The notes: generated from the letters alone by a model not told the origin. Shown: positions 44,348 to 59,279, numbered from the whole stretch's first letter. The stretch is DNA of 59,279 nucleotides, filler included, from Basidiobolus meristosporus CBS 931.73 (GCA_002104905.1; 4 parts of 4 records of this genome joined end to end with filler, not necessarily neighbours in it), one strand, 5' to 3'. Numbers and translations are program-made.

Positions 44348-44436
44348 GGGACGCGGTCGGTGGGGACGAGGCCGCTGGGGACGTGGGAGATGGGCCGTGG
44401 CAGATGGGGACGGGTAGATGGGGAAGAAGATGGTAA
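44348..44436 (+). CDS. 3' end of an Arg/Trp/Gly-repeat precursor (member 0), remainder in gap
   Basis: GGA CGC GGT CGG TGG GGA CGA GGC CGC TGG...TGG GGA AGA AGA TGG TAA. Two missing Gs in G-runs at the contig edge. Confidence 0.7.
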
Positions 44437-44999
44437 ATCCTAGGTGGCTCCCACCACATCCTCAATACCGAAGCAACAGCAAGACTTCTAGTTCATGTAT
44501 TGATATTATTAGGCAGTGCTCATTGCAGCCAATTATCATGCAATAAATCAAATTTAGGCGTGACTGTTCCTCTCGATGATTCGTAACGATCATTTCAGGA
44601 ATTATGACCTGTCAATGCTTTCTGTATCGCAGAATGGGTTAGCAATAATCTCCAGTGTATAAACATGTCAATTCGCTTCATTCATTTGGTAAGGTGATAC
44701 AGTATCATAATAGTGTTTGTTATCTATGTTGGTAATCGCGTGTCTGACATCTATTCCATGGAATATTAGATCATTTTAAAAAATATCGACCTGTGTTGGT
44801 GGCCTTTTAAGTCGCGAATGATTTTGTGGTTTCTGAATTTGATGTGGCTTACGAGGTTAGATTTGAAAGAACGATATAATAAGGTGATGCTAGCATTTAG
44901 TTCTCAATGAGCTTATTTTGGTGCTAGAATTTGCTCATGAAAGCACCACATCTGTTCTCCCAAGAAGCAGATCTGAATTTTTTCAAGAGAAACGGAAAT

Positions 45000-45551
45000 A
45001 TGCAAACCTTCAATTCTCTGCCCCCTATTGATGGCAACTCTGGCTTATGGAGACCACTTGAAATTTATCAAGCCTTCCGCTAGTAATAATGCGGCCATTG
45101 CCTCCGTGTCCAACCACGGATTCAACCCATTCCACAACACTGGCCATGGCGTCCTCATTCCTAACTACCTGATCAATAGGGAGATTGAACTCGCACCAGA
45201 AGAAGTCCGCCTGCGTCGCTTGAATATTGGTGCATTGATTGATCGCTTACTCTCACTGGGTTCCCAAATGAGTCCGAGCTCAAGGGTGCAAGATTCATTA
45301 GCTTCGAGCCAACCGGTATATTTGCCACAGGCGAGACTGGCATGAAATATGGCACTACCAGTGATGAGGCAGTTGAAGATAACCCCGATATTACCGCTGA
45401 TGATGAGGATGAGGATGAAGATGCCACTGACCCAGAGGAGGCCGAGCTATGGGGCAGGTTTGGTGGCTGTGGACGTTGGAGACGAGGAAGATGGGGCCGT
45501 GGCAGGTGGGGTCGCGGCCGCTGGGGACGTCGTAGATGGGGAAGATGGTAG
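45000..45551 (+). pseudogene. Arg/Trp/Gly-repeat precursor member 1 (disrupted)
   Basis: Homologous throughout to members 2, 3 and 5. An extra C in the signal region and a 10-nt deletion (AAGACCTTGG) at ~45259 break the frame. Tail reads EEAELWGRFGGCGRWRRGRW...WGRW. Confidence 0.75.
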
Positions 45552-46245
45552 ACTGCAGTGTGCCTCATTCTTTGCTCTAGTGGTGGATAAGGCCTAGAAT
45601 GATATGTGAAATGTAACGTTGGTAACAACTACTTTCATAAAGCCTACGACTATAAAGAAAACAATAAAATTCTCTATTCCACAATATCTTGGTTACATTA
45701 TACAGCTTTTGATGAGGTCTTAAATATCTAAACAGATTCCACTTTATATTCAATCCAAAGAACATGTTGATTACTGTATATAAATATAACGGTCACGCAA
45801 TAGCAACAGTAATTAATGAGGATGAACAGCTTGAAATCGAGAGATCAACTGTGGTAATACAGTATGTGAAATTCTCGTGTCATCATCTGCATTCGCAATA
45901 CAAAAATAAACGGGTTGCTAACGAGGGCGAGAGTAAAACGATTGAAGGACTTGGTAGTATCTAATTAAAATTGGATGGCAGATAACGGTGGTGTGAAGTA
46001 TTCAAATAACTAACGATGGATCGAACTCTATTCCAAATGAGAATACTCGCTATGTTTCCTATTTGCTGCACCATACATCGCGAAGTATAGAGCTGTAAAT
46101 GGGCGAAGAGCAAAATAGAGATATATTAAAGTGAACGAAATGAACTCGAGTCTAAATAAGTAACTAGATGGCGATAAAAAACATTAAATCCGCATCCGAA
46201 AAATCGTTATTCGACAACAACGCCTAATTACCCAATCGCAAAATA

Positions 46246-46815
46246 ATGATGTTTCTCAAGTCTTCCGTTTTCTCCTCGTTCCTAATGGTCACTTTAGCTT
46301 ACGGGGACCGTTCAATATTCTTCAAGCCAGCGACCAGCAACAATGCGGCCATTGCCTCCGTGTCCAACCACGAATTCAACCCATTCCACAACACTGGCCA
46401 TGGCATCCTCATTCCAAACTACCTGATAAATCGAGAGGTTGAGCTCGCACCAGAAGAAATCCGTCGACGCCACCTGAATATTGGTGCATTGATTGATCGC
46501 TTACTTTCGCTGAAGACCTTGGGGTTCGCAAACGAGTTTGAGTTCAAGGGTGCGAGATTCATTGACTTGGAGCCAGCCCATGAGTTTTTCACCAAGAACA
46601 CCGACATGAAGTATGGCACTACAAGTGATGAAGCAGTGAACGACAACTCTGACATGACTTCTGACAATGTGGATGAAGATGACGAGGACACCAACCCAGA
46701 GGAAGCTGAGCTATGGGGAAGATTTGGTGGTCGTAGACGTTGGGGACGTGGCAGATGGGGTCGCGGAAGGTGGGGACGCGGTCGCTGGGGACGTGGTAGA
46801 TGGGGAAGATGGTAG
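46246..46815 (+). CDS. Secreted cationic-peptide precursor member 2 (189 aa; tail WGRFGGRRR(WGRGR)4WGRW)
   Basis: Intact intronless ORF with signal peptide ending LAYG, conserved pro-domain, acidic spacer and 33-aa tail containing 13 Arg and 7 Trp. Confidence 0.9.
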   Translation: MMFLKSSVFSSFLMVTLAYGDRSIFFKPATSNNAAIASVSNHEFNPFHNTGHGILIPNYLINREVELAPEEIRRRHLNIGALIDRLLSLKTLGFANEFEFKGARFIDLEPAHEFFTKNTDMKYGTTSDEAVNDNSDMTSDNVDEDDEDTNPEEAELWGRFGGRRRWGRGRWGRGRWGRGRWGRGRWGRW

Positions 46816-47446
46816 ACTGCAATGTGCTTCGTTCTTTGCCCCAATGGTGGAAACAATTTCTTGGATGGCAGCTAAAGAACGCCTGTGTTATATTTTCAAG
46901 CAAAGATTGATCCAGTTGTACTAAATAAAGACTACTCATCAACGCAACAGTACAATCATTGTTATTTGAAGATTTCAATAAATGTTCTTGATATAAAAGA
47001 CACCCCAATGGTAACTCGATATACAATATTCAACATAAGACCTTTCTCCTTATGAGTACCTTAAATGCTATAGTAATATATATGTGACTACAAAGCCTAT
47101 CCGTGAAACTACAAAAAATTTACTCTCCCGGTTGTACTCCAAGATTTACCAGCAGCTCAACGTTTGCTTGCGACATTTAAATGACTGAGATATCAATGCA
47201 CTTACCTGATTACTCGTTTGTCTACTCAATCTTGGTATTCAATCTATTTCTTACTTCCTGTGCTTACTTTCCCTACGCCTTGAATACGATGAGTATAATA
47301 AGGCATATATGAGTTGAGAGAGCTGACTGATAACGAGTCTAACTAATCAAATCAGTCAGAATAAAAGCACACCAAAGAGTCTCTAAAAATTCAAATTTGA
47401 GCTCTCGAAAGCAAGTGCAAGTACCTCAACTGACAAGTTACCAAGA

Positions 47447-48013
47447 ATGTTTCCTAATATTTCTATTGCCTGCACAATACTGATGGCCACCCTGGCCTAT
47501 GGCGACCATTTCAAGTTCTTCAAGCCAGCGACCAGCAACAATGCGGCTATTGCCTCCGTGTCCAACCACGGATTCAACCCATTCCACAACACTGGCCATG
47601 GCGTCCTCATTCCTAACTACCTGATCAATAGGGAGATTGAACTCGCACCAGAAGAAGTCCGCCTGCGTCGCTTGAATATTGGTGCATTGATTGATCGCTT
47701 ACTCTCGCTGAAGACCTTGGGGTTCCCGGATGAATTTGAGTTCAAGGGGGTAAGATTCATTGACTTGGAGCCAGCCCATGAGTTTGTCACCAAGAACACC
47801 GACATGAAGTATGGCACTACAAGTGACGAGGCAGTGAATGACAACTCCGACATTACTTCAGATAATGAGGATGAAGATGACGAGGACACCAACCCAGAGG
47901 AAGCTGAGCTATGGGGAAGATTTGGCGGTCGTAGACGTTGGGGGCGTGGCAGATGGGGTCGCGGAAGGTGGGGACGCGGTCGCTGGGGACGTGGTAGATG
48001 GGGGAGATGGTAG
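47447..48013 (+). CDS. Secreted cationic-peptide precursor member 3 (188 aa; same tail as member 2)
   Basis: Intact ORF with TATAATAA at 47294. Confidence 0.9.
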   Translation: MFPNISIACTILMATLAYGDHFKFFKPATSNNAAIASVSNHGFNPFHNTGHGVLIPNYLINREIELAPEEVRLRRLNIGALIDRLLSLKTLGFPDEFEFKGVRFIDLEPAHEFVTKNTDMKYGTTSDEAVNDNSDITSDNEDEDDEDTNPEEAELWGRFGGRRRWGRGRWGRGRWGRGRWGRGRWGRW

Positions 48014-48163
48014 ACTACAATGTGCCGCATTCTTAGCTCCAATGGTGGAAACACTTCGTGGGATAGCAGCCAAAGAACATTTATGCTCTATTTTCAAGTA
48101 AAGATTGTACCGGTCACACTAAATAAAGACATCCCAATTACGCAATAGTACAATCACTGTTAT

Positions 48164-48470
48164 TTGAATACTTTGGCATATGCTATCGGCATGGCTAGCT
48201 ATAAAAATGCACACCAATGCTTAGAACACCGCAAGCCAATGCAGATACAAGATCAGAGCGAAATGGGGATTCTACAGCAATTGAGGAGGAGGAGGCCGAT
48301 TCTGGGGCAAAGTGCTTACAAAATTCCGCCAAGATTGACCGTGGCCACAAGTATCGTAGTGTCAGAGGGTATAAACGTGGGCATGGACATAAACACGGGA
48401 ACAGGACATAGGTAGAGACGCAGACATGAACACAAATGCGGGCAACGGCAGGAGTATGAGTATGAGTATA
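48164..48470 (+). pseudogene. Possible decayed divergent member with acidic patch and His/Arg/Gly/Tyr-rich tail
   Basis: TLAYA resembles the family signal end TLAYG. Then, frameshifted, EEEEAD followed by RGHKYRSVRGYKRGHGHKHG. Confidence 0.3.
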
Positions 48471-48676
48471 AGTATGAGCTCAGTCAATAATGATAAATCA
48501 CCTCCCTTATCATGAGTGAAAGTAAAGCTGAATTTATCAACGACCTTCAATTGCCCCACCGGTAAGTACAGCAAATGCAAATGTCGATTTTCACTCTACA
48601 ATAAACTGCATTCAGCTGTGACCACTCCATTTGTTTAAAAAGATTGGGAGAAAACAGAATGGAATTGTTGCGAATT

Positions 48677-48796
48677 GGCTAAATTTCTGGGTGCTGTTTC
48701 AAAATGCGTCACCGTATGCAACATTGACCAATATAATACAGCGTTCCTCAACACAACTCTAAGATATTGACCAACTTTCAAATCCAAAGAGTGCTA
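48677..48796 (+). promoter_or_regulatory. Conserved non-coding block upstream of member 5 (paralogue of 50644-50742)
   Basis: GGCTAAATTTCTG...TGTTTCAAAATG..TCACCGTAT...CTAAGA.ATTGA...CCAA.GAGTGCTA shared with the second block. Confidence 0.65.
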
Positions 48797-49577
48797 TAAT
48801 TATTTTCATTAGTAAACAATATTTGCCGGTGTAAACAAGGTAGCTATAGATATTCACGTAGAGATTGTGAAACCACTGGCGAATTCTGCAATAATGGTAT
48901 TAACATCGCCAACAAAATTTGTTTCCAAACTCCAAGTGATTATTTGTTGAGACAGAATGGAATATATTTTTCGATTCATATCAATGTTGCAAATTCATTT
49001 CATCGAAATGGAATGCTCAAAATACCACAGCACTGTGGCAAGGGTCTATGTGCGATATGTCGACTCCAATTTATGATTGTTTGAATTGGAGTTATGAGAT
49101 ATAGGATTAGCCAATTCCTCAAATATGAGATGAAAAATAGATACAATATACTACTATGTGCATCCTTACAAAGACCGAGTTACCGTAATACAAAAGACTT
49201 TTCAACAAGCTTTACAAATATTGATATTGCTTGATGGGGCGCATAGTATGTGGCCAAAACATTATCCGCACGTCCGATGAATAAGGATCCAAACGGGATC
49301 ATCATTACTGGGAAAGCATAGCCGACATTCAAATAATTGCAAACCCCCTCTACATACCAGAGCTCCTACTGTACTACTCGGCTTAGAGATATAATTCCTG
49401 TCGTTTTAGCAAACGAGAAAGTTAAATAAACAATAAGTGAGGTAGGTCGAAGTATAATAAACTAAGAGTGTAAAAGCCAACTACCAATGAGTCTAAATAA
49501 GCGATTCGTTTGAGATAAAAGCGCACAAAGTAACCTCCAGAAAGTCAGTAGTAAACAGCTCCAACAAATAACCAAAG

Positions 49578-50147
49578 ATGTTTCCTAAACTCTCCTTTGT
49601 CTGCTCGCTCTTGATGGCCACCCTGACACATGGTGACCATACGAAGTTCTTCAAGCCAGCCGCCAGCAACAATGCGGCTATTGCTTCCGTGTCCAACCAC
49701 GAATTCAACCCATTCCATAACACTGGCCATGGCGTCCTCATTCCTAACTACCTGATCAATAGGGAGATTGAACTCGCACCAGAAGAAGTCCGCCTGCGTC
49801 GCTTGAATATTGGTGCATTGATTGATCGCTTACTCTCGCTGAAGACCTTGGGGTTCCCGGATGAGTCCGAGCTCAAGGGTGCAAGATTCATTAGCTTCGA
49901 GCCAACCGGTATATTTGCCACAGGCGAGACTGGCATGAAATATGGCACTACCAGTGATGAGGCAGTTGAAGATAACCCCGATATTACCGCTGATGATGAG
50001 GATGGGGATGAAGATGCCACTGACCCAGAGGAGGCCGAGCTATGGAGAAGATTTGGTGGCCGTGGACGTTGGGGACGAGGCAGATGGGGTCGCGGACGGT
50101 GGGGACGTGGTAGAAGGGGCAGATGGGGAAGATGGGGTAGATGGTAG
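49578..50147 (+). CDS. Secreted cationic-peptide precursor member 5 (189 aa; 34-aa Arg/Trp/Gly tail)
   Basis: Intact ORF with TATAATAA at 49453. Tail WRRFGGRGRWGRGRWGRGRWGRGRRGRWGRWGRW. Confidence 0.9.
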   Translation: MFPKLSFVCSLLMATLTHGDHTKFFKPAASNNAAIASVSNHEFNPFHNTGHGVLIPNYLINREIELAPEEVRLRRLNIGALIDRLLSLKTLGFPDESELKGARFISFEPTGIFATGETGMKYGTTSDEAVEDNPDITADDEDGDEDATDPEEAELWRRFGGRGRWGRGRWGRGRWGRGRRGRWGRWGRW

Positions 50148-50643
50148 GTTTTGGTAAAGAGGCACTGCTGCGAACTTGGCCAATATAAAAGTAGGGCTGA
50201 CAAAGGAGCATTATAGTTCCCTATAAACAGTATCGATGTATTCTATGGCCGAATTCGTTCCATACCTTCTGAATAAATGTGCTTGCCGCAAATATAGGCA
50301 GTGTAACAATCATATTTCATGGATTTTCCATTTCTCAGTAGCAGATATGGGCGTACGCATCATTTTGGCAATGACAAGGTAGCTCAACTTCCAACTGGTG
50401 ATGAAGAAGCTTGATTGAAAGTTAAGCAATATGTTGAGTCTCCTGTCAACAGCAATGAAGCTACAGGTGATAACACTGGTAGTACTAGATAACCTTCAAT
50501 ATACTGTGTTCTGCTCCACTTGTAAGAAGGGATGGATGTGATAGGCTCTGGCGGGCTTGACAGGAGAGCAATTCAAACGTATATCAAGCGTCAGCCATAT
50601 CGTCACGAAGCGGTCAGATGAAAGAGTGACTATGTTTCTAAAT

Positions 50644-50742
50644 GGCTCAATTTCTGAATGTTGTTTCAAAATGTATCACCGTATACAGCGTTGATCAATA
50701 AGATTCTAAGAGATTGAAAAGTTTCCAAACCCAAGGAGTGCT
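50644..50742 (+). promoter_or_regulatory. Conserved non-coding block upstream of member 6
   Basis: Aligns by eye with 48677-48796. Confidence 0.65.
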
Positions 50743-51157
50743 AAGGTTACTATTACCGTATAGGGTACAAAACAAAGACCCTTGGTTGTGACAATGGGAT
50801 TACTCCACCTCTTGTTTCTTATACGACCCACTTCGAAAGCAAAATAAACAACAGTGTGAGGATCCATACTACACCATCGATCTCCTTCAGAGTGCGATAA
50901 AGCACTGAACAACGGAGCGACAGTGTTGGTCAAGCATACATTTTCAATCGCCAATGGGCATTATTGATGACATAGTTGATATTTTCGGTTATTTCACACG
51001 AGTGCTCATTGCAGTATGGAGCACGGTACTTTATTCAATCTACAAAAGTCTATTTTACAGAAGAGAGGCTAGATAGATTGATGGAGTTGAAAGAAACAAC
51101 TATAAAAGAGCAAGCCACTTACACTCTGGCTAATCAGTAAATCAGTTCTCTTCGAAT

Positions 51158-51712
51158 ATGCTTCATAAATTCACCATCGTTTGCGCTCTCTTAATGGCCA
51201 CCATGGCTTATGGCGACCACCTTCAACCTGTTAACCCAGCTGTTGGGAGTAGCGTGGTTAGTGCCGTGGCATCATCCCGTACGGACTCTAGCCCATTTCT
51301 CTACAAAGGGAGATATTTCGAGCTAGATAACATGCTCGAAATCACGCCTGAGGAAGCCCAATTGCGCCGCCTGAAAATGAAAAAAATCCAGAAAAGTAAG
51401 CGCATCGTCAAACACAAGAAAAAGAAGTACAAAGGCATCACCCGCTTTGCTCGCCCGGATGAGCCGATGACTGAGGACATTGGGCCTGAAATGGGTGTCT
51501 TCAACGACGAGGCTGCTGATGACGATGCTGACAACGACGACAATGCAGAGGAGACCGAACTCTGGCGCAGATTTGGCCGATTTGGAAGATTTGGTCACTT
51601 TCGCCCATACAGAAGATTTGGCCATTTCCGCAGATATGGTCGATTCAGAAGATTTGGGCCTTTCCGAAGATTTGGACCCTTTAGACGTTACGGTAGATTT
51701 TATCGCTGGTAA
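51158..51712 (+). CDS. Divergent secreted cationic-peptide precursor member 6 (184 aa; 49-aa Arg/Phe/Gly tail of RR(F/Y)G(H/R/P)F hexamers)
   Basis: Same architecture: LMATMAYGDH signal end, PEE..LRRL, acidic spacer, EETELWRRF, terminal RW. TATAAAA at 51101. Confidence 0.88.
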   Translation: MLHKFTIVCALLMATMAYGDHLQPVNPAVGSSVVSAVASSRTDSSPFLYKGRYFELDNMLEITPEEAQLRRLKMKKIQKSKRIVKHKKKKYKGITRFARPDEPMTEDIGPEMGVFNDEAADDDADNDDNAEETELWRRFGRFGRFGHFRPYRRFGHFRRYGRFRRFGPFRRFGPFRRYGRFYRW

Positions 51713-51987
51713 CTGAGATTGTTGGTGAATGTATGGAGGTTTCGACGAATGGCACTGGCCTTTGCCCAAGATTCTTCCAATAAATGATATCAAATATTCA
51801 TGCATCACTATTGACTGATTCTTATATGAATGCCCGCTGCTGAGGTGGGTTAGTGGGATGTCCTTGGCTGTACCGCTCGCACTATGCTGTCCCCAACTGG
51901 GTGCAATGGGTTTCATATTATGTACTAGAAGACACATTTCGTCTGCAACAAGCATAGATCTGGCAACAGATAGTTTATAAAAGCGCG

Positions 51988-54319
51988 TTATGAAATTAAT
52001 CGAGTTGAGGTCAGAGCAAATGTATACAATGGAATGATGAGGTTATCATTTTGCAACGAAACAGCTTCTAGCAGGCCTAACAAACCATGTTTCAGTATCC
52101 ACCAACACATAAGGATTCATTCGAAAGCACTAACCTGTCACACAGATCACGGTGAAATATCTCCACGTCTATAGCAAGAAATTGACTTAGAATCACGACT
52201 CCAGTATCTCTCGATGACAAGAACATGGTCCACTCACCTCCCACATCGAAAGAGCTGCGGATCCGCTCAGCACGCCGATTACCAACGACCCAGCAAGCAT
52301 CGATGCAATAAAAGCGGCGGTCCCTTCAACAGTTTTTGAGGTCCCAGGCCAGTGGGTCTTACCGAAGCGCTTTCCCACTATGGAGGCCTTGATGCTCAGT
52401 TAGCGAAAACCATTTACCATCAACGAACAACAATGAAGTGTATACCATGGCATCGCCCAAGCCTAGAGTAAAGATACCAGAGAGATTGGCCACCGCGAAA
52501 TGGCTATGACGTCCAAAATATTTTAGAACGCTACCGAATTCAAAGACTCTCTCGGCCGCTTACCCATTGAGCCAGATAGGAACAGCACACCCTAGCAGTA
52601 GATACATGTGGGATAGAATCACCGGTCCTGAATCACGATGATCCAGAAAAGTCACCAGGAACCCATGCAAAGTTCGACCAAACGGTGGGATGGTGAAAGA
52701 CCTCAAATACTCAACATATATGATGCCGCATAAAGCAACGGTGAATGCCAGATGCATGAATGATTTCTTGAGGGCAAATATCGATCAGCAAAGGCGATAG
52801 AAGAATAGCAGCATGGGACGTACCTCGTATATATAGCCAGGTACAAACATCAAAATCGCCAGTCCATGAAAGTATTTCCGCTTCAAATTGAGTCCAGCAG
52901 AAGTGGTGGTGCTATAAGTGAATTGGGCAATAAACGCCAACGCTATCGCAAGGATCGAAACCCAGTAAAGGCAGAGCCCAAGGTGACTCCACTTCGAGAA
53001 GAGGAACGAGAGAACCCTGATCACATGCAAGGGTGAGGACTACATTTTCCCACACCGTAGAGACCAATTATCTTACCAAAATATGGCGTTCTGGCCCAGG
53101 GCTAGAGAAATCCAGGGTACGATTGCTGCTAGAACCACAGCCACAGTGCCGAGGTAGAAAACGACTGAACTGATTAACACTTGCCAGTCTCTGGCTTCAT
53201 CCTCAGGTATATTACTATTCTTGCGCAAAATATATAAGCATGGCGATAAGACCAGGCCCAGAAAAGTCATCCCTAGCAGTAGCCCCTGTAGCCATATGTA
53301 GAAAGGATCCCGCTCGGCGTTCACAAAATCAGGAAGATACCAAAGGTCGAACTAGAAATATGAAAGCCGGGTGAATAAGCCTGGCTTCAACGCTGGCCAG
53401 TTTCAGGAGACAAGATGTACCTTTTTGACAGCCATGTGTAGCGCATCCAAAAATATCAAGGACATGCCTTGAGATACTACAGCCATCTCTCCAAAAGTAA
53501 AGCTTCTACGTAAAACGCTAGTAATCAAATACATCGACGCCTGGTAAGCACAAATAGAGATAAAAATATGCATTGTGGAGAATGCTAAAACATTACTGGT
53601 TTAGTCTCTAAGTCAAACACTTCAATGACGCACTTGGATCCCTACCTCGCAAGTGGGGGAATATTTCCTTGGCACAAAATGCTGTAGCTAGCAACCCGGA
53701 AGAGAGAACCCCAAAACTCAGATTCTTCTGGTGAATGAACCCTGTAAGGCTATGTACCAAAACTGTATAGCCAAAAACAATGCTCAATTCCAAGAGTGCG
53801 ATGTGATATTCTGCATTAAAGAAAACTTGGTCATTCCCACGTCAAAATACACAAACAAAAGCGAAAATCCACCTAAAGAAGTGCTTGAACGGTGTCCAGC
53901 TGAGTGCATGTCCAAAATCTTTGCAACCAATACAAAAGGCACTAATAGGCAGCCATACAAAAATCCATCGTCAGCTCGAGGACTAGTGAGGGGCAGGAAC
54001 GGATCTGTTAGCGGTTTAAATAGACACATTTAGGACGGAAGCACATACCGATACCACGTGCTCTGCGTCCTCCACAGCTTTAGTTGGCCCAACTCAGCTA
54101 CCTGAGTGACTGACCAAGCCAATATTGATAGCAATGCTAATGCTGATATATTGAACTCAGAACTTAATACATTAGACCGACAAGAATTTTGGGTTAGAGA
54201 CACTCACCAATACATAAGTCTATGGTTAGGAACTGATATGCTTTACATAGCACGTAAAGCACAGAGACAATGATTATGAAATGTTCAGCAGGCAAAGAAC
54301 TGAAACCTTTCCGATCCAT
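51988..54319 (-). CDS. SEC59: Dolichol kinase (multi-exon; 5' exon boundaries approximate)
   Basis: KRKYFHGLA, RDSGPVILSHMYLLLGCA.PIWL, LGLGDAM, GKRFGKTHWPGTSKTVEGT, LLEAVSLQNDNLIIPLY. Confidence 0.9.
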
Positions 54320-54889
54320 TCTGTTCGACTTTGGTGAGCAGCTTTTCACGGAGGATTGTCAGAATTATATGAGGTGCTGCTCATGAGAGAGAGAGCTATT
54401 TTTAGGATTGTGCAAAATCGAGTATTCTAATAAATTCATATTTTAGTCATATTGCTTGGATGACATGACATTTTCTCGGCTTATCACATGTTCTTCAGCT
54501 TTTCCTAGCCCAGAACGTCAGTAAGGTTCAGCCAAACATCAGATTGGTGAATTCTGAGCAGAAACACCAGGAATTGTATTGGTTCAGCATTCTATAAAGT
54601 ACACATATAGTTAAGGCCGCAAACCGGTCGAAGGATAGAGTTGGTTTCTATATAGATGGTTCCTGTACAGATGTTCACAGCCATGACTGCTTCCAACTTA
54701 TTGGTTACTGTCGTCATTAGCACATGGCTGCGATTAAGGGATTATCTCGGAAATGATCACTTGAAAATTGTTACCCAGCGTCACCCCTCCTTTTGCATAT
54801 ACCCCCGCCGTCTTTTTATATTTTGTAGCTTGATAGGGAAGCTTCTCATCTTGTTCGTTCAGTGCCACACTTAGTAGTCCTTGTTAAAA

Positions 54890-55764
54890 ATGAATCCTGA
54901 ATAGTAAGTATTCTACTCTCCTGTGTTGCCGCAATATGATCCCGGAAGCTTATTGTTTATGTGGATTGTTTCCATAGCGATTATCTGTTTAAGCTCTTAC
55001 TTATTGGCGACTCTGGTGTTGGTAAATCCTGCCTTTTGCTTCGTTTTGCGGATGACACCTATACAGAGAGCTACATCAGCACTATTGGTGTAGACTTCGT
55101 AAGTATTTCTTTCGCACACCCCTTACCTCACTATCGCCAGCAATATTGACCCCTTGACTATAGAAAATCCGCACAATCGAACTGGAGGGCAAAACTATCA
55201 AACTTCAGATCGTAAGTGAGGCTTCTCAGTAGCTCAGTGGATACCAAGGCTAATACGGCGTCTTATCATTTAGTGGGACACTGCTGGACAAGAGCGTTTC
55301 CGCACAATCACCTCTTCCTACTATCGTGGAGCACATGGAATCATCGTTGTTTACGACGTTACCGATCAGGATACCTTCAGCAATGTAAAGCAATGGCTAC
55401 AGGAAATCGATCGCTACGCCTCAGAAGGAGTCAACAAGCTCCTTGTTGGCAACAAGAGCGACTTGACTTCCAAGAAGGTGGTTGATTACACAGCCGCTGA
55501 GGTGAGTCGTTTAGCGTTAGACGCCACTATGCCCGTACTCTAACCAAACGGTCTTGACATCAGGAATTCGCCAACACAACCAACATCCCATTCTTGGAGA
55601 CCTCCGCCAAGGACTCCACCAACGTCGAGCAAGCTTTCTTGACCATGGCCAAGCAGATCAAGGATCGTATGGGTACCAACACTATGGCCCCAGCTAATAA
55701 GCAGAACATCAAGATCAGCCAAGGCAGTTCAGTTCCTGCACAATCCAGCGGTGGTTGTTGCTAA
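54890..55764 (+). CDS. YPT1: Rab1/Ypt1 small GTPase (4 introns)
   Basis: MNPEY|[68 protein letters not shown]-terminal GGCC. Confidence 0.97.
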
Positions 55765-56647
55765 TTTAGTGTATGTCTACCAATCCCCTTCCAATCACGT
55801 ATCTCTTGTAAATCCTGAAACCGAACATCTCCAACTTAATTTGTCACCCAAGTGTCGAAGTTTAACAGTGATTTATTTGCATCCTTTTGGACAAGTGCCA
55901 CCCCAATTCCCTCTTGGAAACCAAACAAATGATAAAGTTAGTTGAACGTTGTGTTCATGGCGTTTACCTGGTTGTTGATATGTTCTATGGATTTGGGTGA
56001 CGTAACCCTGATATGTTGCAATGGATGATGATGACTCCGTGTGATAATATCGGAATCCAAGAAATGCGCCAACGTCGGTCGAATCGGACGAACGCACATG
56101 CTGGATGTGAAGTGAATATCTCCTCGTTTTGCCCTAATTTATGCCAGATTTTTCCAGTCACAAGAGATCAACAATTTGCATAGACTCAATCACTTATACA
56201 TTGAGATATCTCCCTCATCTCTGTTTAGTTGACTATTTTCCGACCTGGAAGATAATTCTTGCTTTCTGTCCCTTCCCACCACAGATCCTTGCTACACATT
56301 GTTTCTCATCAAAGAGGTATGTTTATGGACTTTCTTGTAGCTTTGAGCGATAGGTGCAAACAAAGCCCCTGTTTTGTGGGTGAAGTGATCAGCTGGGTTC
56401 TAGATCTCGTGAATACCTGTTTGTGTTGCCATTCTCCATTTGTGTCTCAACCACCGTTCTGTTAGGAATCCAAAGGAGGGCCGTTCTACGTTAACCACAT
56501 TCACTTGAATCCAAGGACATTGACTTCAAAAAGGTTCCAACAGGTCTGTAATTCCATTTCTTCTTCACCCGGCAGGATTTCAATAGTAACCGTGACCCAC
56601 TCTTGGACAGGACACCTATTATTTACACTAACGTATACATCGATTGA

Positions 56648-59169
56648 TTGACGTACCTTTTGAAAGTACGTCAACAACTGTATTTCGATTTTACACTGGA
56701 CTCGTGGCTTGAAGAGAGCAGCAGGAGGTCCCACGGCAGTAATACTCAAGGTAATCCGGATACTTCAGAACCAAACGAGGTTGCTTCCACACCTCCTGAG
56801 AATCCCAATCCTGTTGAAGAAACAACAACCAGTGTAGAGGCGAATACGACGAATCGGACCACAAATCTGCTTTCCATCCAACCGTTTACTGAGGAAAGCG
56901 TCAATATTTCGAGCCCCGAAAGCAATCCCCACTTTCACCATTGCCACCCCGCAAACGCATTAAATTACCAAACACCATTCTCAAAGACTCACAAACGGGG
57001 ATGAGAACCAAACAGACCGGTATGAATGGATTAAACGGACATTCCAATAATATTAGAAATCATGATAATAGTAATAATAGCGAGACTACAGAGGAGGTAA
57101 ATACAAAAGAGAGGAGATCGTGAGAATAGCTATCCAGGCACTTCAAGATTTAGGATACGGGTCAGTCTCCCTTCCGTTAATTGTACAATTCCCAACTGTG
57201 CACCTTGACTAAACATGCTTCTTCTTGACAGTCGAACTGCCCAGCTGCTAGAAGAGGAGTCAGGATTTAATCTAGAAAACCCTCAGTCACTCAGTTCCGT
57301 AAAGGTGTGCATGGATGGGGATTGGGCAATGGTGGAAAGTTGATACCGGTGCTGGAACTCGATCAGAAGAAGGACGTGCAGAAGGTCCAGTTTTTAGTAA
57401 AGCAACAGAAATTCCTGGAGTTGCTGGAAGCCAGAGATGTTGCGCAGGCTTTATCGGTTTTGAGGAACGAATTGCACCGTTAAGCTACGATACTGCGAGA
57501 CTGCACAAGCTATCAAGCTTCTTGATGTGCGCAGATGCAAACGATCTAAGAAAGCAATCCTTGTGTCTGGTGCTAATCGAGAGTCTAGAGAGCTGTTGCT
57601 CGTCCAATTACAAAGTTAGTGGGCTGTTTGTAGATTCAGATATCGATATGGGATCGGGATTTATTGAACTTTACTTTGCCTTTACCACAGACTATATCTC
57701 GTCGTCAGTGATGATCCCAAGCCATCGACTAAGGTCATTGTTTGATCAAGCAGTTGCTTACCAGCGCTCAAATTGTCTTTATCACGATTCTGCGGATACG
57801 TTCGTGACACTTTACGCGACCATCAATGTGACAGGTACTCCATCCTAGAAACGATTGCTTGGAATTGAGATGCTGACTTCCCTTGTTCAGAACCCAGTTC
57901 CTGGGTCACCAAGCATGTCTTCGAGGGGCATCTTGACGAAGTTTGGTAGTGACGTTTTCGCATGACGGGAAATACATCGCATCAGCATCCAAGGACAAAA
58001 CGACCATCATCTGGAGCGTTGAGGTTTAGGGTTTCTAGTTAATTAGCTGGTTTTGCTGTGCGTGTATTAATCGAAGCCATTATATAGCGAAAATGCGCAG
58101 TCCATGTCTTGGAAGGCCATGAAGAGCGGGTGTGCTATCTAGCTTGGTCACCTGATGATACCCATGCTGTTGTCGTGCTACAACGATGGCCAAGTAACTC
58201 TGTGGAATACTAAGGTAAGCCTGGTTTGCCGCCATCATTGGTCGCTTACTATGCCCTAACCAATGTCATATAGACGGGTAAATGCATACGCTCATTCGAG
58301 GGCCACACCGAAGTTGCCGCATGTGAATGGCTGCCAGGCAATGAACATTTCGTTACTGGCAGTTGCGATAAAAACATGTTTCTTTGGGTATGCTTGCACT
58401 CTCGCTATCTCTTCAACACCGGATATTCACGGGTTCTTCAATAGGATATCCACGGACACATATTGCATATTAATGGATTGGAGATCGAATCAACGGTTTA
58501 GCCATCAGCAATGATGGAACACGGATGGTAACCATCTGCCATGACAAAAAGATCCATATTTTATGACATGGAAACCAGATCAGAGATTGAGTAAGTATAG
58601 AGAACCTCACGCTTGCCTAGTAGACTGCTAATAGCACCTTAGTTTCATCACGGAAGACGGTGACATGACAACTGTGAGGCTTTCTGATGATGGAAGATAT
58701 GTGATAGTAAATCTGGGAACTATCCAGGAAATTCATCTCTGGGACATTGTGGAGAAGAAACTGGTCCGGCAGTTTGTTGGATTCAAGCAAGGTCGATTCA
58801 TCATTAGATCGTGTATGGGAGGCCATGGGCAGACATACATTGCGAGTGGAAGTGAAGGTTCGTTTGTGTCGATAATCAACTCGAATAATTGAACGATGGT
58901 AACCCCATTACCGTCAGATGGTAGTATTTATGTTTGGCACAGGGACCATGGCGCTCTCATTGAGACCCTAGTTGGACATTCAGCCACTGTTAACTGTGTG
59001 CACTGGAATCCTGCAAACCCGTACATGTTTGCCTCCGCTAGTGATGACCATACAATTAGATTGTAAGCAATGATCTCCTCTTGCTTCTTTGTTTTATTTA
59101 ACTAACGATCCATGCTGTAGATGGGGTACTAGTGATAAGAATGAAACCAAAGGGAAGTCTCGTTCATGA
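56648..59169 (+). CDS. WDR26: LisH-CTLH-WD40 protein of the WDR26/GID7 family; many 1-nt indels (probable consensus errors); start approximate
   Basis: [113 protein letters not shown]. Confidence 0.8.
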
Positions 59170-59279
59170 GTCAAAAGAATGAATTCGTCCCACACGACTC
59201 TCGTATTCACCTTTCTCAAACATTATCAGCAATGAATTCAGCCCCGTAATCCTCTTTTGTATAGTAAACTTTCGTCTTC

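Follow-up and report, generated by a model that had tools for sequence, protein, structure and literature searches.

Charge-balanced repeat proteins encoded by a tandem gene family of Basidiobolus: candidate precursors of Arg/aromatic cationic peptides

Within a window of 59,279 nucleotides from Basidiobolus meristosporus CBS 931.73 (the whole stretch of DNA that was analysed, to which positions refer unless a contig is named), positions 44348 to 51712 carry a tandem array of genes for small proteins with a predicted signal peptide, a pro-region, an Asp/Glu spacer and a repetitive Arg/aromatic tail. The family is restricted to the genus Basidiobolus, where it was found in B. meristosporus and B. 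ranarum, it has no known family assignment, and it appears to be undescribed. The best-supported reading, to which we give somewhat less than even confidence, is that these genus-specific proteins would be secreted, disordered and charge-masked precursors with the Arg/aromatic tail as the functional part. In two of the protein types, B and C, the Lys/His-rich segment may be functional as well. The targets would most likely be anionic microbial surfaces.

The last 14,932 bp of the window (44348-59279) are one whole scaffold of this strain with a GC content of 35-52%, and the best database matches of this scaffold are hypothetical proteins of CBS 931.73 itself. Six family genes lie on it, all on the plus strand and intron-free; four are intact, one is disrupted, and one is both cut by the scaffold edge and frameshifted. 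Genes were called from an open reading frame (ORF) listing, direct reading of the frames and alignment of the intact members, and the ORF listing and alignment bear out the six co-oriented intronless genes that had been reported in an earlier sequence-only reading of this DNA. The genes are the following:

44348..44436, plus strand: 3' end of a type B gene, truncated by the scaffold edge, with a frameshift within the (GRGRW) repeat
~45004..45551, plus strand: disrupted type A copy (pseudogene), in the pieces 45028-45345 and 45342-45551
46249..46815, plus strand: intact type A gene, 188 amino acids (aa) from the second Met, 189 aa from 46246
47447..48013, plus strand: intact type A gene, 188 aa, used as the representative
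49578..50147, plus strand: intact divergent type A gene, 189 aa; junction ELWRRF with the dibasic site present; 14 R in the tail
51158..51712, plus strand: intact type C gene (RF type), 184 aa; last of the array

The truncated gene reads (GRGRW)3 in frame 1 and ...GRWGRRW-stop in frame 3 (stop at 44434-44436), and it aligns at 95% to the tail of a type B copy near ~48.3 kb on contig MCFE01000402.1. The disrupted copy has no ATG in frame with its signal peptide and carries a frameshift or deletion past ...DRLLSL; its tail, ELWGRFGGCGRWRRGRW...RRRWGRW, is still legible. The counterpart of this copy on the same 81-kb contig (L002:12448-12981) is likewise without ATG and without signal peptide. 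No family remnants were seen in the intergenic stretches at 48.0-49.6 and 50.1-51.2 kb.

Alignment of the intact members confirmed the common plan that had been described before, with a signal-peptide-like N-terminus, a pro-region with a PEE motif, an Asp/Glu spacer, a junction and a repeat tail that ends in RW-stop. In the representative gene, the parts are located as follows:

47447..47503, plus strand: predicted signal peptide, aa 1-19, MFPNISIACTILMATLAYG; predicted cut before D-H; kept in both species
47648..47671, plus strand: first conserved motif P-E-E-V-R-L-R-R, aa 68-75; candidate dibasic processing site
47825..47911, plus strand: acidic spacer, aa 127-155; 15 D/E and no K/R; ends P-E-E-A-E-L
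47912..48010, plus strand: cationic tail, aa 156-188; WGRFGGRRR(WGRGR)4WGRW; 13 R, 7 W and 12 G

Signal peptides are predicted, being called by a sequence rule (hydrophobicity and the residues at -3/-1). In the window, the core reaches a 10-aa Kyte-Doolittle maximum of 2.0-2.6 and is followed by A-Y-G ahead of D-H; over every member of both species the maximum is 1.7-2.8, the -3/-1 residues are small (A-x-G or A-x-S), and there is usually one K/R near the N-terminus. Across the intact members of the window, the first motif reads PEE(V/I/A)x(L/R)R(R/H) and the junction EE(A/T)ELW(G/R)RF. The first motif (aa 68-75) has an acidic run on its N side and a helix-prone segment, LNIGALIDRLLSLKTLGF, on its C side, and P68, E70 and R74 are nearly invariant across the two species. 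Type A proteins (188-189 aa) carry this helix-prone segment in the middle and a tail of the form WGRFGG...(WGRGR)n...GRW. Type B proteins (193-218 aa) have a Lys/His-rich middle block (KKHHKK...) of variable length and a tail (WGRGR)n...GRRW. Type C, a single copy of 184 aa adjoining the dolichol kinase gene DOLK, has a Lys-rich middle (+9) and an RF/RY tail, WRR-FGRFGRFGHFRPYRR-(F/Y)G(H/R/P)FRR x4-YGRFYRW.

The precursor reads as modular, because two B. ranarum members each hold one module without the other. Module 1 would begin with an acidic run, followed by P-E-E-x-x-L-R-R and then by a segment of cationic or amphipathic character; in module 2, an extended acidic spacer would lead through P-E-E-x-E-L-(W/Y)-(G/R)-R to the Arg/aromatic tail. 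The B. ranarum protein P0009 (106 aa) has a signal peptide, a pro-region, LLR and a +10 Lys-rich segment, with neither spacer nor tail, and the gene at L006:976-1347 encodes a signal peptide, spacer and tail, with neither first motif nor middle segment. The middle segment has significant helical amphipathicity in type C and one B. ranarum copy (p <= 0.01), and no significant amphipathicity in P0009 or in types A and B. As only some members show it, we abandoned the idea of an amphipathic-helix antimicrobial peptide (AMP) in every copy of module 1. AlphaFold2, run on a 21-sequence alignment of the two species, gave no confident fold (mean predicted local distance difference test score 48, predicted template modelling score 0.16); the model contains the signal-peptide helix, a short hairpin and a helix at residues 78-89. 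Judged by this model, the family proteins are best regarded as disordered, and the lack of a predicted fold is as would be expected of a precursor.

A homology search returned the paralog P0003, which led to contig MCFE01000402.1 (81 kb), of which 37 kb were examined (L001-L003). On this contig, 22 family genes stand head to tail between DnaJ/UCH and DOLK; 14 are intact, three have tails shifted to another frame, and five are otherwise broken. Window positions 46318-58019 (11.7 kb) match the contig at 99.4% identity and positions 44359-46974 (2.6 kb) at 95%, and ~2.3 kb of the contig, corresponding to two repeat units, are missing from the window, with the breakpoint inside the gene at 46249-46815. 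Since the match of 99.4% goes together with a two-unit difference, the scaffold, on sequence grounds, repeats the 3' end of the array, either as an allele (haplotig) or as a recent segmental duplication, with a copy number altered by unequal crossing-over. By such crossing-over the array expands and contracts, and its many near-identical copies point to a high demand for the product.

In B. ranarum, the family is found at the syntenic locus, after DnaJ-Pmp3-UCH (L004) and before DOLK-Rab-WDR26 (L006), and a third contig (L005) holds five tandem copies. The signal peptide, the acidic spacer, the junction P-E-E-T-E-L-(Y)-R-R and a pro core, G-x-(L/F)-I-P-x-(Y/F)-(L/M)-(L/I)-(N/D)-x-(E/D)-(I/V)-x-L-T-P-E-E-x-Q-L-R-R, are conserved across the species, whereas the tails differ completely. 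B. ranarum tails are either (RGG/RGRF)n ending in GWGSGWNDDCGGDDCGDC, or RY/D repeats (HDYDRYRR), or of RF/RY type; the last is found in the DOLK-proximal gene L006:976-1347, which is the positional ortholog of type C. The C-termini read ...CGDC, ...RSY or ...YYWY. The RW-stop that had been called invariant, and the ELW of the junction, therefore hold within B. meristosporus and fail in B. ranarum. In a tree of the pro-region, type A (100/99) and type B (99/99) form clades of B. meristosporus only and the RGF type (97/98) a clade of B. ranarum only, with the deep nodes unresolved. The two species thus show lineage-specific expansions at a syntenic locus and a fast turnover of tails. The GWGSGWNDDCGGDDCGDC end of the RGF-type members (L005:509-6451), which holds 3-4 Cys and many Asp and does not occur in B. 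meristosporus, can be likened to a small metal-binding or cross-linking cap.

Pairwise Nei-Gojobori omega (ratio of non-synonymous to synonymous substitution) was 0.16-0.43 in the pro-region and 0-0.17 in the tail, at a synonymous divergence (dS) of 0.1-0.97. With Tandem Repeats Finder, the 15-bp period of the tail DNA was ~78% self-identical, while the peptide repeat is exact; in type C the tail DNA has a period of 18 bp. Because omega is low and an exact peptide repeat is kept over diverged codons, selection acts on the protein, and most strongly on the tail. With 22 copies, a syntenic locus in B. ranarum and purifying selection, the reality of the genes is far beyond chance.

The charges of spacer and tail were compared after delimiting the spacer by stepping back from the junction while the net charge of a 12-residue window stayed at or below -2. 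The numbers of D/E in the spacer and of R in the tail of the four intact window genes (14/13, 15/13, 16/14 and 16/18) were recounted and were identical to those given before. Net charges of spacer and tail are -15/+13 and -16/+14 in type A, -20 to -22 and +13 to +15 in type B (-15/+15 with a narrow 27-aa spacer), -16/+18 in type C, -12/+12, -12/+14, -13/+14 and -8/+6 in the B. ranarum RGF type, -11/+10 in the L006 gene and -9/+12 in the B. ranarum protein P0004. The spacer contains no K/R, and the RW/RF tails contain no D/E. Over seven lineages, which are related, come from two species and have heuristic spacer boundaries, spacer and tail charge correlate with r = 0.71-0.85 (permutation p 0.03-0.004). 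The match of acidic spacer and tail that had been proposed from the window alone is thereby extended to diverged lineages of two species, across which the two charges co-vary. Precursors of defensins and of frog AMPs are reported to balance the net charges of pro-piece and payload (PMC7073735), and cationic AMPs are inhibited by acidic pro-peptides (PMC6057973); the relation seen here between spacer and tail is the same as in this rule for animal precursors.

To what extent the family reaches beyond the genus was addressed by several searches. A profile of the tail-less pro-region gave nine matches among 1.84 billion cluster representatives, all from Basidiobolus (B. meristosporus and B. ranarum). 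Word-indexed homology searches with the whole protein and with spacer plus tail returned the organism's own paralogs only, and from spacer plus tail no (GRGRW)n protein was found elsewhere; P0012 (E = 0.007), an unrelated protein with three RGRW units, was rejected as a chance match. A Pfam scan of the four intact proteins yielded noise only (best E = 0.012, far below the gathering score), an ESM Atlas feature search gave no usable match, and of 527 patterns matched when metagenome contigs were scanned with the pro-region profile, none was confirmed. In a literature search, the tail strings were in no paper found. The claim of a lineage-specific family without known assignment is upheld by the Basidiobolus-only profile matches and the absence of a Pfam match.

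The two conserved motifs are alike, and most members have RR, a site of kexin type, at the end of both. RR follows P-E-E-x-x-L of the first motif in most members, and it follows P-E-E-x-E-L-(W/Y) at the tail junction in type C, in the gene at 49578 and in all B. ranarum members. Within the type C tail, RR recurs at intervals of 6 residues, so that there are five (F/Y)GxFRR units; in the RY tails of B. ranarum the interval is 8 residues, with HDYDRYRR x3-4 in P0004. According to the favoured reading, the genes would encode small disordered secretory pro-proteins made of one or two 'mask plus payload' modules. In module 1, the payload would be helix-prone (type A), rich in Lys and His (type B) or rich in Lys (type C); in module 2, it would be the (WGRGR)n, (FGxFRR)n, (RGRF)n or RY-rich tail. 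The acidic stretch would neutralise the tail in the secretory pathway, thus providing self-protection and solubility, and a kexin-like or other basic-residue protease would cut at or near P-E-E-x-x-L-(W/Y)-R-R, in a late compartment or once the protein has left the cell. The freed cationic Arg/aromatic peptides would bind anionic surfaces, most likely the membranes or walls of microbes that compete with the fungus in the herptile gut, dung or soil. Secretion, cleavage, masking and antimicrobial activity are inferred, the first of them from sequence features only.

A number of observations weigh against this proposal. The tail junction is G-R, with no dibasic site between ELW and GR, in most type A and all type B members, and the sole tail RR of type B lies two residues from the C-terminus. 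Because types A and B have G-R at the junction, the sequence gives no support for a canonical convertase that would release the RW tail; a monobasic or other protease would have to do this, unless the protein functions without being cut. A cationic middle block makes the mature protein as a whole far from neutral in type C (+14) and in some long type B members (+8 to +11), and the limits of the charge correlation given above count here too. Within one type, tails are invariant and not diversifying, which is atypical for AMPs in an arms race. In B. ranarum, some tails are rich in Tyr and Asp, with no more than a moderate positive charge and with a Cys/Asp-rich end, which fits a purely membrane-lytic role poorly, and Arg-rich tails would be very labile to trypsin-like proteases of the gut. 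In a search for RNA runs with a 5.9-kb query none was listed, no transcript-derived contig carrying family proteins was seen, and papers on Basidiobolus, on zygomycete secretomes and on Kex2-processed repeat proteins (KEPs) do not describe the family. Taken together, the peptide-precursor interpretation of the sequence-only reading gains from the family limits, the charge co-variation and the constraint on the tail, and it loses by the missing dibasic site of types A and B, the non-neutral type C and B proteins and the Tyr/Asp tails.

The main rival, which we regard as unlikely though deserving serious attention, is that the protein remains uncleaved and acts as a secreted diblock polyampholyte, in which cation-pi 'stickers' of Arg and aromatic residues would drive self- or complex coacervation. 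The product would serve as glue of the capilliconidia, coat spores or hyphae, form a matrix or be held to the wall as a layer by its cationic tail. The charge-balanced blocks, with opposite charges kept strictly apart in spacer and RW/RF tails, and the predicted disorder of the whole protein speak for it, and the Tyr-rich and Cys-rich ends of B. ranarum could cross-link. Three observations fit this explanation as well as the precursor reading, or better: composition (Arg, any aromatic W/F/Y, Gly) rather than sequence is conserved across types, types A and B are without a junction cleavage site, and the many near-identical copies suggest bulk production. It is harder to reconcile with the P-E-E-x-x-L-R-R motifs, which are conserved and resemble processing sites, with single-module members such as P0009, which has neither acidic spacer nor tail, and with the large net charge of type C and of some type B copies; moreover, no such protein is known from fungal adhesives. 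An improbable alternative is that the tails are chopped at each RR and trimmed to very short peptides in the manner of KEPs, for instance to (F/Y)G(H/R/P)F in type C and HDYDRY in P0004, which would serve in signalling, act like pheromones or be the starting material of modified peptides. The RR periodicity of type C (five units, 18-bp DNA period), the repeats of P0004, the RR-bounded units of the L006 gene and the predicted signal peptide fit such a scheme, and B. meristosporus is reported to be the fungus richest in KEPs (PMC7329392). KEPs are defined by a signal peptide and at least three tandem repeats of at least 8 aa between KR/KK/RK/RR sites (PMC7329392), whereas here types A and B have 0-2 dibasic tail sites and the units measure 6 aa including RR in type C and 8 aa including RR in B. 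ranarum, that is, 4-6 aa between the RR sites. The RW tails, which make up the great majority of copies, hold one RR or none, and among the called genes around the arrays of both species there is no tyrosinase gene and no DUF3328/UstYa gene, which with oxidases marks the neighbourhood of ustiloxin-type (dikaritin) precursors, the Pfam labels being DnaJ, UCH, Pmp3, DOLK, Rab and WD40 only.

We consider it quite improbable that the proteins are effectors directed at a host or prey, with an Arg/Trp tail that would be cell-penetrating or cytolytic towards animal cells (insect carriers, the herptile gut, opportunistic infection). Repeats of Arg and Trp are a classic type of cell-penetrating sequence. 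The family evolves fast and is confined to one genus, and Basidiobolus is animal-associated and an opportunistic pathogen (PMC9391592). The tail, however, has no attached cargo domain, the objections from cleavage and protease lability apply equally, and the sequence does not separate animal from microbial targets. Finally, the array could be a decaying, non-functional repeat or an artefact of annotation or assembly, as might be suggested by disrupted copies (8 of 22 on the 81-kb contig, 2 of 6 in the window), by inconsistent gene models and by the absence of a listed RNA run. This is very unlikely indeed, given an omega well below 1 in pro-region and tail at substantial dS, exact peptide repeats from diverged codons, and starts, stops and motifs kept at a syntenic locus in two independently assembled species.

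The charge-masked precursor of the favoured reading has its counterpart in animal AMP precursors (alpha-defensins, frog skin and cathelicidin-type), which show the same order of signal peptide, acidic pro-piece and cationic payload, the same charge balance (PMC7073735, PMC6057973), tandem multigene families, and conserved leader/pro motifs with a payload that varies between lineages. The Basidiobolus family differs from them in having no sequence or fold relationship, a payload that is a low-complexity Arg/Gly/aromatic repeat without Cys, a junction often without KR/RR, two modules per precursor and a fungal origin. Trp/Arg-rich AMPs are membrane-active, highly cationic and without regular secondary structure (PMC6017362). 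Indolicidin, tritrpticin, lactoferricin-derived and synthetic RW peptides share the Arg and Trp composition of the Basidiobolus tails; they are 6-13 residues long, non-repetitive, often Pro-rich and derived from cathelin or other precursors, whereas the RW tails have 33-38 residues, a strict WGRGR periodicity and ~36% Gly. Armadillidin, with GGGF(H/N)(R/S) x6, is a linear, membrane-active AMP of Gly/Phe/Arg repeats (PMC5031766), and the nlp-29 AMP cluster of C. elegans consists of small tandem genes that are syntenic yet highly divergent between sister species (PMC2453101), the same arrangement as in the Basidiobolus array. Armadillidin and the NLP/CNC peptides share linear, unstructured short repeats of Gly, aromatic and basic residues with the tails, the RGF tails of B. 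ranarum and the RF tail of type C being closest to them; the Basidiobolus proteins have denser Arg, a long acidic spacer, a conserved pro-region and no homology to either. The likeness to Trp/Arg AMPs, armadillidin and nlp-29 is one of design and not of homology.

KEPs (ustiloxin-type, alpha-factor-like pheromones, Rep1, Ece1/candidalysin) share with the family a secreted precursor, dibasic motifs and payload repeats, and the RR-bounded units of type C and of the B. ranarum RY tails are KEP-like. The RW tails differ by lacking internal dibasic sites, the units are too short and have no spacers between them, there is no DUF3328 neighbour, and an acidic mask is not a KEP feature. B. meristosporus CBS 931.73 is reported to have 43 KEPs, the most of any fungus, among them S-3, a type found in Basidiobolus only, with 7 genes and Tyr/Asp-rich repeats (PMC7329392). 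In its composition, S-3 recalls the RY/D tail of P0004. Regions with Arg/aromatic 'stickers' and coacervate adhesives have in common with the family blocky opposite charges, an Arg/aromatic/Gly composition and predicted disorder. The Arg/Tyr grammar of phase separation and of coacervate adhesives is established, the examples being intracellular RGG proteins or animal adhesives; we know of no secreted fungal example.

On the 3' side, the array is followed by a dolichol kinase gene, a Rab GTPase gene and a WDR26-like gene, in this order, as transferred through the 99.4% alignment:

51970..54300, minus strand: dolichol kinase gene (SEC59/DOLK; PF28421 DOLK), with introns; approximate, transferred from the 99.4%-identical contig
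54875..55750, plus strand: Rab/Ypt-type small GTPase gene; approximate coordinates

Of the flanks GET4 and SEC59 named in the sequence-only reading, SEC59 is thus correct, while GET4 lies outside the scaffold and the real 5' flank is DnaJ/UCH. This flank is rearranged, with DnaJ(+), Pmp3(-), UCH(+) and array in B. ranarum (L004:3571-3777) and UCH(-), DnaJ(-) and array in B. meristosporus (L001:1-3223). As the gene order differs between the species, the array start is, to judge from these flanks, a local rearrangement point.

Public gene models over the arrays are unreliable. Several merge 2-3 family genes into products of 314-579 aa, some of which carry a faint 'Phosphodiest' label, and introns span frameshifts in K493DRAFT_364753 (over the copy at 45004-45551), in K493DRAFT_357305 and in the B. 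ranarum model K7432_009108, at whose locus the plain ORF L006:976-1347 is a complete 123-aa member. Type B copies (L001:10001-20168, L002:11152-11856) have a further ATG in frame, 31 codons ahead of the signal-peptide Met (MHKNSAFAVSKIILELSKVAVNHSSNTCHSKM...), and public type B models begin there; use of this ATG would turn the signal peptide into an internal hydrophobic segment. An exact-protein look-up returned no record of the window type C protein (51158-51712). On the minus strand, long ORFs (~120-210 aa, PHLPRPQRPRP...-rich, without conserved start) lie opposite the family genes, one each, at 45173-45628, 46419-46856, 47617-48054, 49748-50203 and 51323-51955. They were rejected as genes, since the plus-strand frame is under purifying selection, and most likely arise as a side effect of the GGN/CGN/TGG repeat together with the acidic GAN run.

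The observation from which this analysis started is correct and was understated, as it missed the larger array, the upstream module of acidic motif and cationic segment, and the KEP-like RR periodicity of the RF tail; its interpretation is plausible and partly supported by tail constraint, charge co-variation, apparent modularity and cross-species synteny. As far as we know, no precursor design like that of animal AMPs has been described in fungi. To our knowledge, fungal ribosomal antimicrobials are either Cys-stabilised (defensin-like, AFP/PAF) or heavily modified, as ribosomally synthesised and post-translationally modified peptides. The (RW)n motif has so far been studied mainly in synthetic peptides. 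It is possible, though we hold this fuller proposal only tentatively and with some doubt, that Basidiobolus has evolved de novo a genus-specific, highly amplified set of linear, host-defence-like Arg/aromatic peptides with a co-evolving acidic mask, which, as the first fungal family of ribosomal linear cationic AMPs without Cys, would help the fungus to shape or survive the gut bacteria of amphibians and reptiles, and would yield natural (WGRGR)n payloads and two peptides (Lys/His-rich and Arg/Trp-rich) per gene. If true, an early-diverging fungus would have convergently reinvented the design of animal host-defence peptides, natural examples of the (RW)n motif would be at hand, and the competition of a gut-resident fungus with bacteria could be approached through a concrete system. 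Should the proteins turn out to act uncleaved, they would be natural secreted diblock polyampholytes and would bear on phase separation outside the cell and on bio-adhesion. In both cases, 20-odd 'hypothetical' and partly mis-modelled genes gain a testable function, and the family provides a clean case of charge co-evolution between two segments predicted to be disordered.

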